From contig NC_047083.1 in the NCBI RefSeq assembly GCF_902459465.1, positions 9,362,001 to 9,426,000 of the forward strand: a stretch of DNA of 64,000 bases, written 5' to 3'. Shown here piece after piece: positions 64 through 31,361 of the stretch (position 1 is its first letter; every line of letters begins with the position of its first letter). The position numbers and the translations under genes are program-made. The stretch comes from Asterias rubens (taxonomy: Eukaryota). The notes beneath the pieces are model-generated. The model was not told where the DNA came from. It did no database searches and saw nothing but the letters and a program-made list of their open reading frames with translations.

Positions 64-2821
64 CTGAAATACACCAACACCAATTCCTATACCACCAACT
101 GCTCCAATGTGAACTTTCAGCTCCTCAACTAGGGCGTTCTTGCAACCCTAGGCATAAACAAACACCAGCATTGAATTACGTGGTATTTAAATGAAGGCAG
201 TGGAAACTATTAATTACTCAAAATAGTTATTAACATAAAACCCTTATTGGTAAAACATTGTGAACCCTCTGAAGTAACGTAGTTTTCGAGAAAGAAGTAA
301 TTGTCCACGAATTTGTTTTCGATACCTCAGAATTAGATTTGGACGTCCCGAAACAAGCCACTGCAAGCACACAACTTTGTGTGACAAGGGTGTTTTTCTC
401 CCATTCATATCTCGCAACTTCGACGACCAAATTGCGCTCAAATTTTCACTGCACATGTTGAGATACACCAACTGTGAAGGCTAGTCTTTGACAAGCGTCT
501 TTAAACAACTGTCAATTTGTCGCAACCCTCTCATCAAGACACAGCTCTGCCCTCATGGCAACCCCACCCCCTCCCCCCACCCAAACCAATTACTCTAGTA
601 CCCCTCTTACCCGTTCCCACTTAGCAGCAAGTGTGTCCATACCGCATCCTGCGACGTGTGTAATACAGCATGAGTCTGGCGTCTGGCCTGGTCCGTACAC
701 GCGCGGATGGAACTCGTTCCAGTCGGTGCCATTTGTGACTCCACAACACAGTAACTGGAAGAGTAAAAACATTTCCAGCTTATTATTAGAAAGCAAAACA
801 TATGTTACATTAACTTGACCCAATTTCATAGAGCTGCTAAGCACACACATTTTGCTTAGCATGAAATTTCTTCCTTGACAAAAACAAGATTAAAACCAAT
901 TAATTTCCATTTGCTGCGTATAGCTTGTTTGCTTCCTGAAAATCACGAAGAAACTTGGTTGGTAATCCTGTTTTTATCAAGGAAGAATGCTAAGCAAATT
1001 GTTGTGCTTAGCAGCTCTATGAAAATTGGCCCGGGTCGCAGGTTCAAGTCCCACTCATTCAACAACCTCAAATAATTTAAAGTATCCCACTCATCAGTTT
1101 CTCTAATAAGTAGTTTATCAAAATATTGTGAGAAAACAATCCTTAAAATAACCTCTTGTTTTTGGCAAACGGAACAGTCTCTACTGACAGTGTGCTAAAT
1201 ATTACGGTACCAAGGACAAAACACAAAATGGAAAACAAAAGTACTCAATTAGGGGAATTCTAAAGACTGTGCTGTACAAGGGGAAACAAAACGAAAGAAT
1301 GCTCAACATGAATGCATTCAAAAGAATGCGTGTACATTCAAGGATACATTTTTAAGAATGTGTCAACAAAAATGTGTGTACTATAATTATTATTATACGG
1401 GAAGGTATTTTTAAGCATGTTATGGCTTACAGGGCGCATTTCTAAGAATGTGTGGGCTTACAGCGAAGCACTTCAAGAAGCACTTTTTAAGACTTTGTGT
1501 TGGACTTACAAAGTTGTGCATTCTGTCCCACGCTGAGTGTGTGGACTTACAGGAACGCATTTTTAAGAAAGTGTGGACTTACAGGGGTGCATTTTTAAGA
1601 ATGCGTGTGGACTTACAAAGTTGTGCATTCTGTACCACGCTGAATGTTTGTACCTACAGGAGCGCATTTTTAAGAATGCATTAATTTACAGAGTGCAGTT
1701 TTAAGAATGCGTGTTGGACTTACAAAGTTTTGCATTCTGTCCCACGCTGATGTTAATCCTTGCTGTCCGGTTGCGCCGTACAGCGACAGTCCATTCTGGG
1801 AGAGATCCTGCTCAACATACGCCCCTACCTGGCTCCTATTAGCCACGCCCAGCCCTCCGGCGATCATTTCTATGATCAGGATACCAGCCATTAAGATGAA
1901 ATACTTAACAAAGAAAATAAACAAGAACAAATGTTAGGGGGACGTAAAGCTTTCCATAGAGCGTGCTTGTGTTTCATGTATAACAATATGTACATATGAT
2001 TTGACTGAGAATCTCCACGTGAAATGATTGCAAGGTCAAAATGTGATTATGGACGGGGATTGACGTGGGCCTCAAGGCATATCTTGGACGTAATTTACGA
2101 GCCAAGCCTTGGAGTGTGACGTCAGATGTTCAGACCGAAAGGCCACTGAGGCCGTGTCCGAATTTGCGAAAGGAAAATAAGAACCTGGGAAAAGAAGTGG
2201 CGCCTGGTGGCGCTTTATATTATACTTACCGTCAGCACCATACATGGGTTCTCTCTGACTGCACCACAACATCCCAGGAAGGATACCAGCATAATGATGC
2301 CACCAACGATCATAGTAACGGTTGCCGCATTGAGGAACGGGAAGCTGGGTAAGAGGGTAGCGAAGGGACCCTCACGGTTGAGCAGGTAAGCACCGGCTCC
2401 TAGCACCGTCCCCCCGGAGAGCTAGACGGGGAGAATTAGGGGAAAGAGAGGTTTATCAACAAACAAGAGAGCATGCAGCGAAACTGACATGGGACTGGCT
2501 TTACACATCTAAAGATGACTTTTTGTTTATACTTTTGTATAACCTTGACGGCCCCTGTCCAACTTGTAATCATTGTTGTAATATGTCNNNNNNNNNNNNN
2601 NNNNNNNNNNNNNNNNNNNNNNNNNNNNNNNNNNNNNNNNNNNNNNNNNNNNNNNNNNNNNNNNNNNNNNNNNNNNNNNNNNNNNNNNNNNNNNNNNNNN
2701 NNNNNNNNNNNNNNNNNNNCAACATCGTCATTATGTGGCCAAACATAATACTCACAAAAAACAGCAGATTGAAGGCGAATAGTAGATATTTGACACATTG
2801 GGCGCATCCTTGCAACGCCAT
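64..2821 (-). CDS. TSPAN4/9-like: Tetraspanin A (TSPAN4/TSPAN9/CD53-type), 5 coding exons in window; last exon lies beyond position 1
   Basis: Exons 2821-2756 (MALQGCAQCVKYLLFAFNLLFF), 2421-2230 (LSGGTVLGAG...GCCGAVRENPCMVLT), 1903-1724 (YFILMAG...[12 protein letters not shown]), 754-611 (LLCCGVTNGTDW...PDSCC...KWER), 147-64 (GCKNALVEELKVHIGAVGGIGIGVGVFQ). All junctions are GT-AG and phase 0. Shows the CCG motif, PxSCC, a 6-Cys large extracellular loop and a GxFATLxPSFPxLxAA segment like TSPAN4/9. 222 aa visible. Confidence 0.95.
817..1032. mobile_element. MITE family with (G)GCCCAATTTCATAGAGCTGCT termini (Harbinger-like)
   Basis: Inverted ends gacccaatttcatagagctgctaagcac / gtgcttagcagctctatgaaaattggcc. 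Related pieces near 11215-11550, 26150, 43450, 44470, 45780-45920, 50800-51225 and 63255-63680. Confidence 0.6.
1300..1750. repeat. Degenerate minisatellite in tetraspanin A intron 3, including three 107 bp-spaced copies of the exon 3 end and donor
   Basis: tggacttacaaagtt(g/t)tgcattctgt(c/a)ccacgctga occurs at 1501, 1608 and 1715. Many aagaatgcgtgtggacttacagg subunits surround them. Confidence 0.9.
2588..2719. other. Assembly gap (132 N) in tetraspanin A intron 1
   Basis: Run of n between coding exons 1 and 2. Confidence 0.99.
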
Positions 2822-30430: not shown

Positions 30431-31361
30431 TCATTTTTCCAACGGGGCGTAATTGAGGAGTTTTTCGATGAGGTCAACGTGGGAGAGGAGCATCCTCCGG
30501 CAACAGTACCGCTTCAATCCGAGAGCGTCCAGGGCATCTCTGAAGGAAAGAAGAAACAAGACATAAAACTGATTTAAAGGGTCTGGTTACTTGTTGTATG
30601 ACACAAAACACAACCTTCCACAGGTTTACATTACATGGTGTTACCGCAAACCAGATTCATTGGGAGAGGCATGTCACAAACCTGGAGCTCTACGGTGGGC
30701 TACCAAGAGTTAGCACCAAGATTAGGGCAAGAAGGCTGAGACTAGCAGGTCACTGTCTCAGACATGCTGAGCTGGCAGCGAACAAGCTTGTGCTTTGGGC
30801 CCCTACTCAAGGTCACTGTTCCCGAGGTAGACCACAAACCACCTATGTGGACACCTTGAGCCGGGACTCTGGACTGCGTCGGGAAGAGCTGCGTACAGCA
30901 ATGGAGGACCAACGTGTTTGGAGGGCCATCATCCGATGCTCCGCATCGACTGAATGAAATATATATTGATACCTCCTCACCATGCAATGCCTCAAATCCT
31001 ATTTACATTATTGCACTCGCACGATTTGAAAACAATAATGGTCGAAAGCGTCCCCTAAAATACAACCTGCCTTTATTGCCTCCGTGAAGTATCTGGCCTG
31101 ACTGACTGTCATTCACTCGCAGCACAGGCTGTATACTCCCAAGGGAGTTGAGATGGTTTAAGGAATGATTTAAGGCCAAGTGACTAGGGATAGACAAGTT
31201 GGAAGTGCTTTGAGACGCTCTTTGGGCTGAAATAAATTATATATAAAATTGATTATTATAACTTACCCTTCTGAGTATTCAGCCTGCAGGAGGCCGAGGT
31301 ACGTCTCCCATTTATTGCCGACAACTTTGCCGCAAGTGAAGCAACGGATGGGAATAATCAT
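30431..31361 (-). CDS. POLR2L: DNA-directed RNA polymerases I/II/III subunit RPABC5 (RPB10), 67 aa, 2 exons
   Basis: Exon 1 31361-31267 plus exon 2 30539-30431 (phase 2, GG|A) give [67 protein letters not shown]. This is nearly identical to the RPB10 sequence as I recall it (CxxC...CC zinc ligands). Missed by the ORF track. Confidence 0.98.
30645..30960 (+). mobile_element. RTE-clade (RTE-X-like) LINE 3' fragment in the POLR2L intron
   Basis: Translation [37 protein letters not shown]...[12 protein letters not shown]...AMEDQRVWR is the typical RTE ORF C-terminus. It ends in tgaatgaa. Confidence 0.85.

Follow-up and report, generated by a model that had tools for sequence, protein, structure and literature searches.

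In the starfish Asterias rubens, POLR2L (RPB10/RPABC5) adjoins two tandem tetraspanin genes of the TSPAN4/TSPAN9 lineage, TSPAN-A and TSPAN-B, and the linkage of POLR2L with this tetraspanin lineage is likely to be ancestral to the deuterostomes. We analyzed a window of 64 kb, numbered from its first base. An earlier note on this DNA had described the three genes as co-directional, and the gene models agree: all three lie on the minus strand, are intact, and have canonical GT..AG introns. The stretch singled out in that note, 64-31361, runs exactly from a TSPAN-B exon boundary (64) to the POLR2L ATG (31361). The features were as follows.

31267 to 31361, minus strand: POLR2L (RPB10/RPABC5) coding exon 1 (Pfam RNA_pol_N, protein P0241)
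30431 to 30539, minus strand: POLR2L coding exon 2 and stop codon (67-aa product, exact RPABC5 cluster member)
29694 to 30430, minus strand: POLR2L 3'UTR, about 740 nt (mismatch-free contigs, RNA runs X1 and X2)
15734 to 29693, no strand: spacer between POLR2L and TSPAN-A, repeat-rich, with no sign of a further gene
9904 to 15733, minus strand: TSPAN-A, TSPAN4/9-lineage tetraspanin, 240 aa (gene model, Pfam Tetraspanin, tree)
64 to 2821, minus strand: TSPAN-B, tandem paralogue of TSPAN-A (gene model, Pfam Tetraspanin on exons)
2588 to 2719, no strand: assembly gap (N) in TSPAN-B intron 1, flanks collinear with Asterias amurensis
1484 to 1754, minus strand: 107-nt tandem repeat, 2.5 copies, also in A. 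amurensis

POLR2L is intact, with two coding exons (CDS 31361-31267 and 30539-30431) that encode 67 aa. Exon 1 opens with the ATG at 31361, contributes residues 1-32, among them the CFTC zinc-binding pair, and stops in codon phase 2; exon 2 supplies residues 32-67 with the cysteine pair of RYCCRRM, and the product carries four zinc-binding cysteines (CxxC ... CC) in RCFTCGK and RYCCRRM. P0241, the exact product of the window gene, matched Pfam PF01194 (RNA_pol_N) with E=1.8e-33 and 115 bits (cut-off 26.9) across profile positions 1-58 of 58, a full-length match. At 90% identity, the product falls into one cluster that also holds vertebrate, amphioxus, hemichordate, mollusc, and cnidarian RPABC5, a membership taken from the cluster listing; the POLR2L homology search gave mostly odd-length gene models. 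Unique RNA depth falls to approximately zero below 29694, past the 3'UTR.

The distance from POLR2L to TSPAN-A is 14,697 bp (~14.7 kb), and the claim that the RPB10 gene stands directly upstream of the two tetraspanins held when this spacer was searched. Long ORFs within it had no match in Pfam, and in A. amurensis no gene is called in the 10 kb that lie upstream of TSPAN-A and align to window positions 15734-23686. RNA-run contigs over 24431-30430 gave cover that was unique in the POLR2L 3'UTR (29694-30430) only, the remaining peaks being repeats. The spacer repeats include an 82-nt array at 16758-17271 and SINE-like copies. Upstream of POLR2L, the largest ORFs belong to a PAN+Fibrinogen_C gene and Ly6/uPAR-like genes, and an ORF at 32549-32887 had no Pfam match. 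Rfam and tRNA scans of the whole window found no family and no tRNA.

TSPAN-A has six coding exons (15733-15668, 14719-14528, 13989-13813, 12333-12193, 11691-11608, and 9966-9904) and is 92.9% identical to the A. amurensis 'tetraspanin-9-like' protein P0001. Five coding exons of TSPAN-B are in the window (2821-2756, 2421-2230, 1903-1724, 754-611, and 147-64), the last exon falling beyond window base 1; the 222 aa within the window are 97.7% identical to the A. amurensis 'tetraspanin-4-like' protein P0013 (245 aa). TSPAN-A and TSPAN-B share 49.5% identity and are therefore old paralogues, and a tandem of TSPAN-A followed by a second tetraspanin recurs in A. amurensis and Patiria. Taken singly, exons of the two genes match consecutive parts of PF00335 (profile positions 14-77, 79-139, and 141-179); TSPAN-B exon 3, searched alone against Pfam, had no match, and the near-identical A. 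amurensis proteins P0001 and P0013 carry PF00335. Both genes encode CCG...DW...PDSCC...GCG...GC in the large extracellular loop. The gap at 2588-2719 touches no coding sequence. It lies between TSPAN-B exon 1 (ending at 2756) and exon 2 (starting at 2421), its flanks align collinearly and on the same strand to A. amurensis points 42 bp apart, and the exons on either side, both phase 0, align to adjoining residues of P0013. In the 107-nt repeat, TSPAN-B exon 3 is copied at its 3' end, together with the splice donor of intron 3.

In the acorn worm Glandiceps talaboti (OZ203281.1), a TSPAN4-like gene at 9,327,226-9,330,958 (minus strand) is the immediate neighbour of POLR2L at 9,345,601-9,346,379 (plus strand). 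The two genes are head-to-head and 14,642 bp apart, and the spacer contains no N and no called gene; the two sequence stretches that carry these loci overlap, with 5,358 of 5,358 bases identical. As in the starfish, then, a TSPAN4-like gene adjoins POLR2L across about 14.6 kb, and the layouts differ in that Glandiceps has a head-to-head arrangement, one tetraspanin, and a cation-efflux gene after POLR2L, whereas the starfish has a tandem arrangement and two tetraspanins. This retention in a hemichordate, an intermediate lineage, supports the proposal that the linkage predates the echinoderm-chordate split. In the lamprey, POLR2L and a CD151-like tetraspanin are convergent, with 714 bp between the latter and the POLR2L 3' end.

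The human 11p15.5 segment CD151-POLR2L-TSPAN4 resembles the starfish in that POLR2L adjoins a TSPAN4-lineage tetraspanin. We take human TSPAN4 to be head-to-head with POLR2L and <1 kb from it, with CD151 on the 3' side of POLR2L; in the starfish, by contrast, the tetraspanins lie 3' of POLR2L, co-directional and 14.7 kb off, and they are two TSPAN4/9-type genes, with no CD151-type gene in the window. The flanking of human POLR2L by CD151 and TSPAN4, which the earlier note gave as established, is borne out as to gene order by the published '...CD151, POLR2L, TSPAN4, CHID1...' (PMC5024517), and POLR2L and TSPAN4 are both listed, without orientation, in PMC3101357.

Mapping POLR2L neighbours across further lineages, the check proposed in that note, bore out the linkage in part. 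Glandiceps has a TSPAN4-like neighbour and lamprey a CD151-like one only, while amphioxus has no tetraspanin exon within 10 kb of POLR2L, which is flanked by cation-efflux genes instead, and medaka has lost the linkage, its POLR2L lying among Lipase_3, CPSF6/7-like, and Sdh5 genes. No tetraspanin exon was found within 10 kb of POLR2L in frog, Saccoglossus, or the annelid Paralvinella, negatives that carry little weight, since in both starfish and Glandiceps the two genes are more than 10 kb apart. Among echinoderms, the linkage is seen in one asteroid genome, that of this window; the sequence covered upstream of TSPAN-A in A. amurensis and Patiria, 10 kb in each, stops short of POLR2L. In one amphioxus assembly, a 34.24 Mb chromosome carries the TSPAN4-like gene at 9.10 Mb; in another, a 34.42 Mb chromosome carries POLR2L at 8.92 Mb. 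From these positions in two assemblies, the genes appear to share one chromosome and are possibly ~0.2 Mb apart. Such positions fit the published amphioxus 'TSPAN4 cluster', which spans 1.3-3.6 Mb and is interspersed with non-tetraspanin genes (PMC2965184). A cation-efflux gene beside POLR2L is common to acorn worm and amphioxus, and the POLR2L neighbourhood is therefore partly conserved. Six-frame ORFs taken from the POLR2L loci of amphioxus and the hemichordate had no counterpart in the starfish window beyond the POLR2L exons; no cation-efflux gene was detected in the window, and none lies within 33 kb of POLR2L.

Two published descriptions bear on this neighbourhood. The chordate 'TSPAN4 gene cluster', 500-600 My old, comprises TSPAN4, CD151, TSPAN18, and TSPAN8-like genes together with non-tetraspanin genes; it has been described for amphioxus, Ciona, and vertebrates, and quadrupled in vertebrates (PMC2965184). 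TSPAN-A and TSPAN-B form a small ambulacrarian counterpart of the TSPAN4 member of this cluster, the window holding only these two tetraspanins. POLR2L is not named as an anchor in the text or supplements of Huang et al. 2010 (PMC2965184), and our literature search found no paper linking POLR2L with tetraspanin synteny or microsynteny. The second description is that of conserved ancestral microsyntenic pairs (CAMPs), almost 600 pairs, each of two unrelated genes, kept close in diverged animals, mostly 5'-5' (Irimia et al. 2012, PMC3514665). POLR2L and its TSPAN4-lineage partner resemble these pairs in being close in starfish, hemichordate, and human (in lamprey, on the CD151 side only), and differ from them in that their orientation varies and no conserved non-coding sequence was detected.

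The account that we prefer, and regard as probable taken whole, is that the adjacency was inherited by common descent from the deuterostome ancestor, where the layout would probably have been head-to-head, as in Glandiceps and human. A small segment carrying POLR2L would then have inverted in the starfish lineage to give the co-directional layout, and the TSPAN4-lineage gene would have duplicated in tandem in that lineage to give TSPAN-A and TSPAN-B. The linkage may have been kept passively or under weak constraint, presumably with no strong selection acting on it, and would have loosened in amphioxus and been lost in medaka. An inversion, which together with re-promotering was one of two changes that the earlier note offered for the co-directional genes, fits these data: flipping POLR2L alone turns the head-to-head layout of hemichordate and human into the starfish tandem.

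It had also been suggested that long retention may imply shared regulation. We found no support for this: neither orientation nor spacing is constant, and a search for conserved non-coding sequence was negative. If the pair were a selected unit held together by cis-regulatory sequence, either a bidirectional promoter or tetraspanin enhancers around a bystander POLR2L, breaks between the two genes would be harmful. We consider this unlikely. The adjacency does recur in three deeply separated lineages, the layout is divergent in Glandiceps and presumably head-to-head in human, and the spacers are oddly alike in size (14,642 bp in the acorn worm and 14,697 bp in the starfish). Divergent orientation is also the one over-represented in CAMPs (PMC3514665). 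However, orientation differs between starfish, which is tandem, and acorn worm, and blastn of the window spacer against the Patiria and Glandiceps spacers found no conserved non-coding sequence. The distance ranges from <1 kb in human to about 14.6 kb, and the ambulacrarian gap is too large for a common core promoter; bidirectional promoters are recognized by head-to-head genes with starts less than about 1 kb apart, whereas the starfish genes are co-directional at 14.7 kb and those of Glandiceps head-to-head at 14.6 kb. Moreover, neither the break in the linkage in medaka nor its interruption in amphioxus comes with any sign of harm. That POLR2L and the TSPAN4-lineage gene form a selectively kept regulatory block older than the deuterostomes, one that survives inversion and rarely separation, is decidedly unlikely; tetraspanin control elements would in that case lie in the ~14-15 kb spacer or around a bystander POLR2L.

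It is very unlikely that ambulacrarians and vertebrates independently acquired a tetraspanin next to POLR2L, by chance or convergence, an outcome that a large family (about 30-40 genes per genome) and a common ancestral chromosome would favour. Amphioxus, frog, Saccoglossus, the annelid, and medaka, none with a tetraspanin within 10 kb of POLR2L, speak for such a coincidence, as does the variation in orientation between lineages, tandem in starfish versus divergent in acorn worm and human, which counts against ancestral linkage. Likewise, a search of the 64 kb window for orthologues of other human 11p15.5 genes found none, leaving no second neighbour common to the window and the human segment, and a coincidence could be picked out of many gene pairs. 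Against this, the same orthologous tetraspanin lineage is involved in starfish, acorn worm, and human, and our rough estimate of the probability of meeting that specific orthologue by chance is ~1e-4 over the whole genome and about 2e-3 if a single linkage group is considered. The apparent placement of the amphioxus pair on one chromosome, possibly about 0.2 Mb apart across two assemblies, and the cation-efflux neighbour common to acorn worm and amphioxus also argue for inheritance.

Inheritance of the adjacency concerns a particular tetraspanin lineage, and a phylogeny including both proteins, as the earlier note had advised, placed both in it. In the ML tree (IQ-TREE), the echinoderm clade holding TSPAN-A and TSPAN-B had support of 87/93, and it joined the Glandiceps and amphioxus TSPAN4-like proteins and vertebrate TSPAN4+TSPAN9 with moderate support of 88/77, in a sampling that left out CD53, TSPAN2, TSPAN18, and many other subfamilies. 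AU tests rejected union of the echinoderm clade with CD151/TSPAN11 (p=1.5e-5), CD63 (p=0.015), and CD9/CD81-type proteins (p=0.016), and retained its union with TSPAN8 (p=0.095). A GC..KL stretch before TM4 had hinted at a CD151-type identity, which the AU test ruled out. The best vertebrate matches of TSPAN-A and TSPAN-B were TSPAN9 and TSPAN4. Among 1.84 billion representative proteins, the best match of the TSPAN-B orthologue outside its own cluster was Glandiceps P0255 (E=2.6e-52), and in the reverse direction the Glandiceps tetraspanin locus was matched best by asteroid A-type proteins.

The motifs on which the earlier note based its likeness to TSPAN4/TSPAN9 rather than CD63 or CD9 are present and lineage-limited. 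TSPAN-B carries FATLLPSFPFLNAA after TM2 and DLSQNGLSLYGATGQQGLTSAW at the start of the large loop, and TSPAN-A has its own version of both. In a regex scan of 56 labelled tetraspanins, the motifs (FATLxxSxPxLxAA; DLxxGLxLYGxxGxxGLTxAW) were confined to the echinoderm clade and vertebrate TSPAN4/TSPAN9, the amphioxus TSPAN4-like protein having the second only; the strict second motif occurred only in TSPAN-A, TSPAN-B, their A. amurensis orthologues, and amniote TSPAN4. Neither motif was found in the CD151/TSPAN11, CD9, TSPAN8, CD63, or cnidarian sequences of this set. Both proteins also fit the '6-cys-a' loop pattern CCG--[DN][WY]--PxxCC--C--GC, which is common to CD151 and CD63 too and excludes only the TSPAN8, CD37, and CD81 types. 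Table 1 of Huang et al. 2010 gives this pattern for TSPAN4, and PxxCxC instead for TSPAN8 (PMC2965184). These comparisons support TSPAN-A and TSPAN-B as probable echinoderm co-orthologues of vertebrate TSPAN4/TSPAN9. That they are instead TSPAN8-like or an echinoderm-specific expansion, with a family-level resemblance to the human proteins, is highly improbable: the support of only 88/77, the surviving union with TSPAN8, the subfamilies outside the data set, and the frequent lineage-by-lineage expansion of invertebrate tetraspanins (PMC2965184) would allow it, but the best vertebrate matches, the lineage motifs, and the TSPAN4-type rather than TSPAN8-type loop argue otherwise, and TSPAN8-like genes are themselves part of the ancient chordate 'TSPAN4 cluster' (PMC2965184).

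The starfish POLR2L-tetraspanin neighbourhood adds a further example to a class of conserved gene pairs that is already known. It opens no new question, as hundreds of ancient gene pairs are already known and functional coupling is not indicated here. The linkage does make POLR2L a concrete non-tetraspanin anchor linking the TSPAN4-type genes of ambulacrarians with the CD151-POLR2L-TSPAN4 segment of vertebrates, and it widens the published chordate 'TSPAN4 cluster' to take in echinoderms and hemichordates. It would also polarize a small rearrangement, with POLR2L inverted in the starfish lineage, and the anchor aids orthology assignment in a family whose trees are weak.

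POLR2L, encoding RPB10/RPABC5, and the tandem tetraspanin genes TSPAN-A and TSPAN-B are all on the minus strand.

Gene features in the window
31361-31267 and 30539-30431, minus strand: POLR2L coding exons, with GT donor, AG acceptor and a codon split as GG/A
29694-30430, minus strand: POLR2L 3'UTR, ~740 nt, from mismatch-free RNA-run contigs
15733-9904, minus strand: TSPAN-A, six coding exons, 240 aa
2821-64, minus strand: TSPAN-B, five coding exons in the window, the sixth beyond its start

POLR2L encodes 67 aa, among them the CFTC and YCC cysteine pairs, and its product matches Pfam RNA_pol_N at E=1.8e-33. 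Its exact match in the protein collection, P0241, belongs to a cluster of 201 RPABC5 proteins (90% identity) from vertebrates, amphioxus, hemichordates, molluscs, annelids, cnidarians and one sponge. An antisense 137-aa ORF within the POLR2L intron (30544-30954, plus strand), which had no Pfam match, resembles the terminal part of a retroelement ORF.

All introns of TSPAN-A and TSPAN-B are GT..AG, with phase 0 at each junction. TSPAN-A was 92.9% identical to 'tetraspanin-9-like' P0001 of Asterias amurensis and TSPAN-B 97.7% identical to 'tetraspanin-4-like' P0013 of the same species, while the two were 49.5% identical to each other. Positions 64 and 31361, between which an earlier note had placed the three genes, are exactly the last TSPAN-B exon boundary and the POLR2L ATG. 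An N gap at 2588-2719 falls in TSPAN-B intron 1, between exon 1 (ending at 2756) and exon 2 (starting at 2421). Because its flanks align collinearly to A. amurensis on one strand, with 42 bp between the points, and the exons on either side encode consecutive P0013 residues, the gap is irrelevant to coding sequence and gene order. At TSPAN-B exon 3/intron 3, a 107-nt unit consisting of the last ~30 nt of the exon, the GT donor and ~77 nt of intron is repeated 2.5 times (1484-1754, minus strand), leaving two decoy donor-like copies within intron 3; A. amurensis carries the same array (locus L001, 22746-23058). The tandem of TSPAN-A and a second tetraspanin was also found in A. amurensis and the valvatid Patiria, so the duplication is old.

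We measured 14,697 bp from the POLR2L stop to the TSPAN-A ATG and 7,082 bp from the TSPAN-A stop to the TSPAN-B ATG. Long ORFs of the first spacer had no Pfam match, scans found no Rfam families or tRNAs, and no gene is annotated in A. amurensis over the 10 kb upstream of TSPAN-A, which aligns to window 15734-23686. Contigs assembled from public RNA runs, informative on presence and not on absence, gave unique cover of 24431-30430 only in the POLR2L 3'UTR, the remaining peaks being repeat copies of enormous depth. On present evidence, therefore, the three genes are immediate neighbours, and POLR2L does lie directly upstream of two co-directional tetraspanins, as the earlier note described.

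The spacer also holds an 82-nt tandem array (6.3 copies, 16758-17271). A SINE-like element of 150-300 nt, with more than 12 copies on both strands (~27031-27630 and many sites in 1-28 kb), reached depths of 1e5-1e6 at its peaks in public runs. A single-exon 338-aa ORF (35249-36262, plus strand) is divergent to POLR2L and 3.9 kb away from the POLR2L ATG. It has a signal-like start and encodes both a PAN/Apple domain and a complete fibrinogen C-terminal domain (E=1.6e-65). Ly6/uPAR three-finger-like ORFs with hydrophobic tails at their ends, and a pair of near-duplicate ORFs, lie at 40202-41137 and 53454-53729 (plus strand) and at 50395-50751 and 62873-63172 (minus strand); the sole Pfam match of the Ly6/uPAR-like ORFs, to UPAR_LY6_2, was weak and did not reach the family cut-off (E=5.6e-4). 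A segmental duplicate seems to be present in the right half of the window.

The best vertebrate matches of TSPAN-A were TSPAN9 proteins. In a HMMER search of 1.84 billion representatives, the best match of the TSPAN-B orthologue outside its own cluster was P0255, a 'tetraspanin-4-like' protein of the acorn worm Glandiceps talaboti, followed by representatives of TSPAN4- and TSPAN9-named clusters. We built an IQ-TREE phylogeny of 56 labelled sequences, which left out CD53, TSPAN2, TSPAN18 and other subfamilies. The asteroid A and B groups fell with crinoid, brittle-star, urchin and sea-cucumber genes in an echinoderm clade (support 87/93), which joined the Glandiceps and amphioxus TSPAN4-like proteins and the vertebrate TSPAN4+TSPAN9 clade (100/99) at 88/77; the CD151/TSPAN11 clade had a separate place. 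The echinoderm clade was then forced together with one other group at a time.

AU tests of the forced groupings
CD151/TSPAN11: p-AU 1.5e-5
CD63: p-AU 0.015
CD9/CD81-type: p-AU 0.016
TSPAN8: p-AU 0.095, not rejected

The first three groupings were rejected. Two motifs that had been likened to TSPAN4/TSPAN9 over CD63 or CD9 proved to be restricted to the TSPAN4/9 lineage among the 56 sequences, and the strict EC2 motif is common to TSPAN-A, TSPAN-B and amniote TSPAN4. Their large-loop cysteines are of the '6-cys-a' type, the pattern given for TSPAN4 by Huang et al. (PMC2965184). From the tree, the AU tests, the motifs and this pattern, TSPAN-A and TSPAN-B are most plausibly the echinoderm co-orthologues of TSPAN4/TSPAN9. 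The Glandiceps TSPAN4-like gene has 7 coding exons and retains an intron that separates TM3 from the large loop (EC2); in TSPAN-A, TSPAN-B and the Patiria genes both exons are fused (177-180 nt), a structure that points to loss of the intron in asteroids.

The position of POLR2L was determined in one echinoderm, A. rubens, and locus comparisons elsewhere covered 10 kb flanks each. The decisive result came from Glandiceps, where two loci could be joined via 5,358 identical overlapping bases.

Glandiceps talaboti pair on OZ203281.1
9,327,226-9,330,958, minus strand: TSPAN4-like gene
9,345,601-9,346,379, plus strand: POLR2L

The genes are head-to-head, with 14,642 bp between them and neither N nor a called gene in the spacer. 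A second ambulacrarian lineage thus has the pair, in the orientation that we take to be human, with TSPAN4 head-to-head with POLR2L and CD151 tail-to-tail. In lamprey, a 259-aa tetraspanin with CD151-like exons is convergent to POLR2L, 714 bp beyond its end, so the CD151 half of the human layout was already present in the ancestor that lampreys share with jawed vertebrates. The published human order is '...PNPLA2, EFCAB4A, CD151, POLR2L, TSPAN4, CHID1, AP2A2...' (PMC5024517).

Amphioxus POLR2L has cation-efflux genes on its flanks and no tetraspanin exon within 10 kb. In one assembly it lies at 8.92 Mb on a chromosome of 34.42 Mb; in a different one, TSPAN4-like P0258 lies at 9.10 Mb on a chromosome of 34.24 Mb. 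Across the two assemblies, the genes likely share a chromosome without being adjacent. These positions fit the published 'TSPAN4 cluster', which spans 1.3-3.6 Mb with many other genes interspersed (PMC2965184). In Branchiostoma floridae a second, very divergent tetraspanin of 243 aa (locus L014, 18681-22094, minus strand) is convergent to the TSPAN4-like gene, 4.7 kb away. Cation-efflux (ZnT, PF01545) genes adjoin POLR2L in amphioxus (L002, 13869-20415 and 1-3108) and Glandiceps (L003, 19651-20779), one C-terminal exon being 52% identical over 60 aa; this gene is a candidate second ancient neighbour of POLR2L, and none occurs in the 64-kb window.

Medaka (Oryzias javanicus) POLR2L has introns and is flanked on one side by Lipase_3 and a 148-aa gene, and on the other by CPSF6/7-like and Sdh5 (SDHAF2-like) genes, so the linkage was lost there. 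The human counterparts of these neighbours are at 11q12, and medaka POLR2L appears to have relocated. Frog, Saccoglossus and the annelid Paralvinella had no tetraspanin within 10 kb of POLR2L, a weak negative since the pair is ~14.6 kb apart elsewhere. A tetraspanin neighbour of POLR2L was recovered in Glandiceps (TSPAN4-like) and lamprey (CD151-like), but not in amphioxus (within 10 kb) or medaka.

POLR2L adjoins the same orthologous tetraspanin lineage in starfish, acorn worm and human. Chance adjacency to a specific orthologue is, by our own estimate, of order 1e-4 genome-wide and ~2e-3 in one ancestral linkage group, and several hundred truly ancient gene pairs are documented (PMC3514665). 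Together these favour inheritance from the deuterostome ancestor, which we consider likely; the Glandiceps pair and the human order support the earlier note's dating of the linkage before the echinoderm-chordate split. With Glandiceps and human both head-to-head, that layout would be ancestral and the co-directional starfish layout derived. Inversion of a small POLR2L segment alone would convert one into the other, which fits the inversion already proposed.

The earlier note also suggested shared regulation. That POLR2L and the TSPAN4-lineage gene form a regulatory block is unlikely: orientation and distance vary between lineages, the pair is apart in amphioxus and medaka, and no common spacer sequence was detectable between the window and Glandiceps or even Patiria. 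None of these features carries a sign of selection for co-regulation, and the simplest account is that the pair was passively retained in genomes that rearrange slowly.

An ancient chordate tetraspanin cluster (PMC2965184) is already in the literature, as is a class of conserved microsyntenic pairs (PMC3514665). Our literature search, which did not extend to the pair list of the Irimia supplement, turned up no paper in which POLR2L is named as a partner. The POLR2L/tetraspanin pair is a sound, modest addition to the known class of ancient gene pairs.
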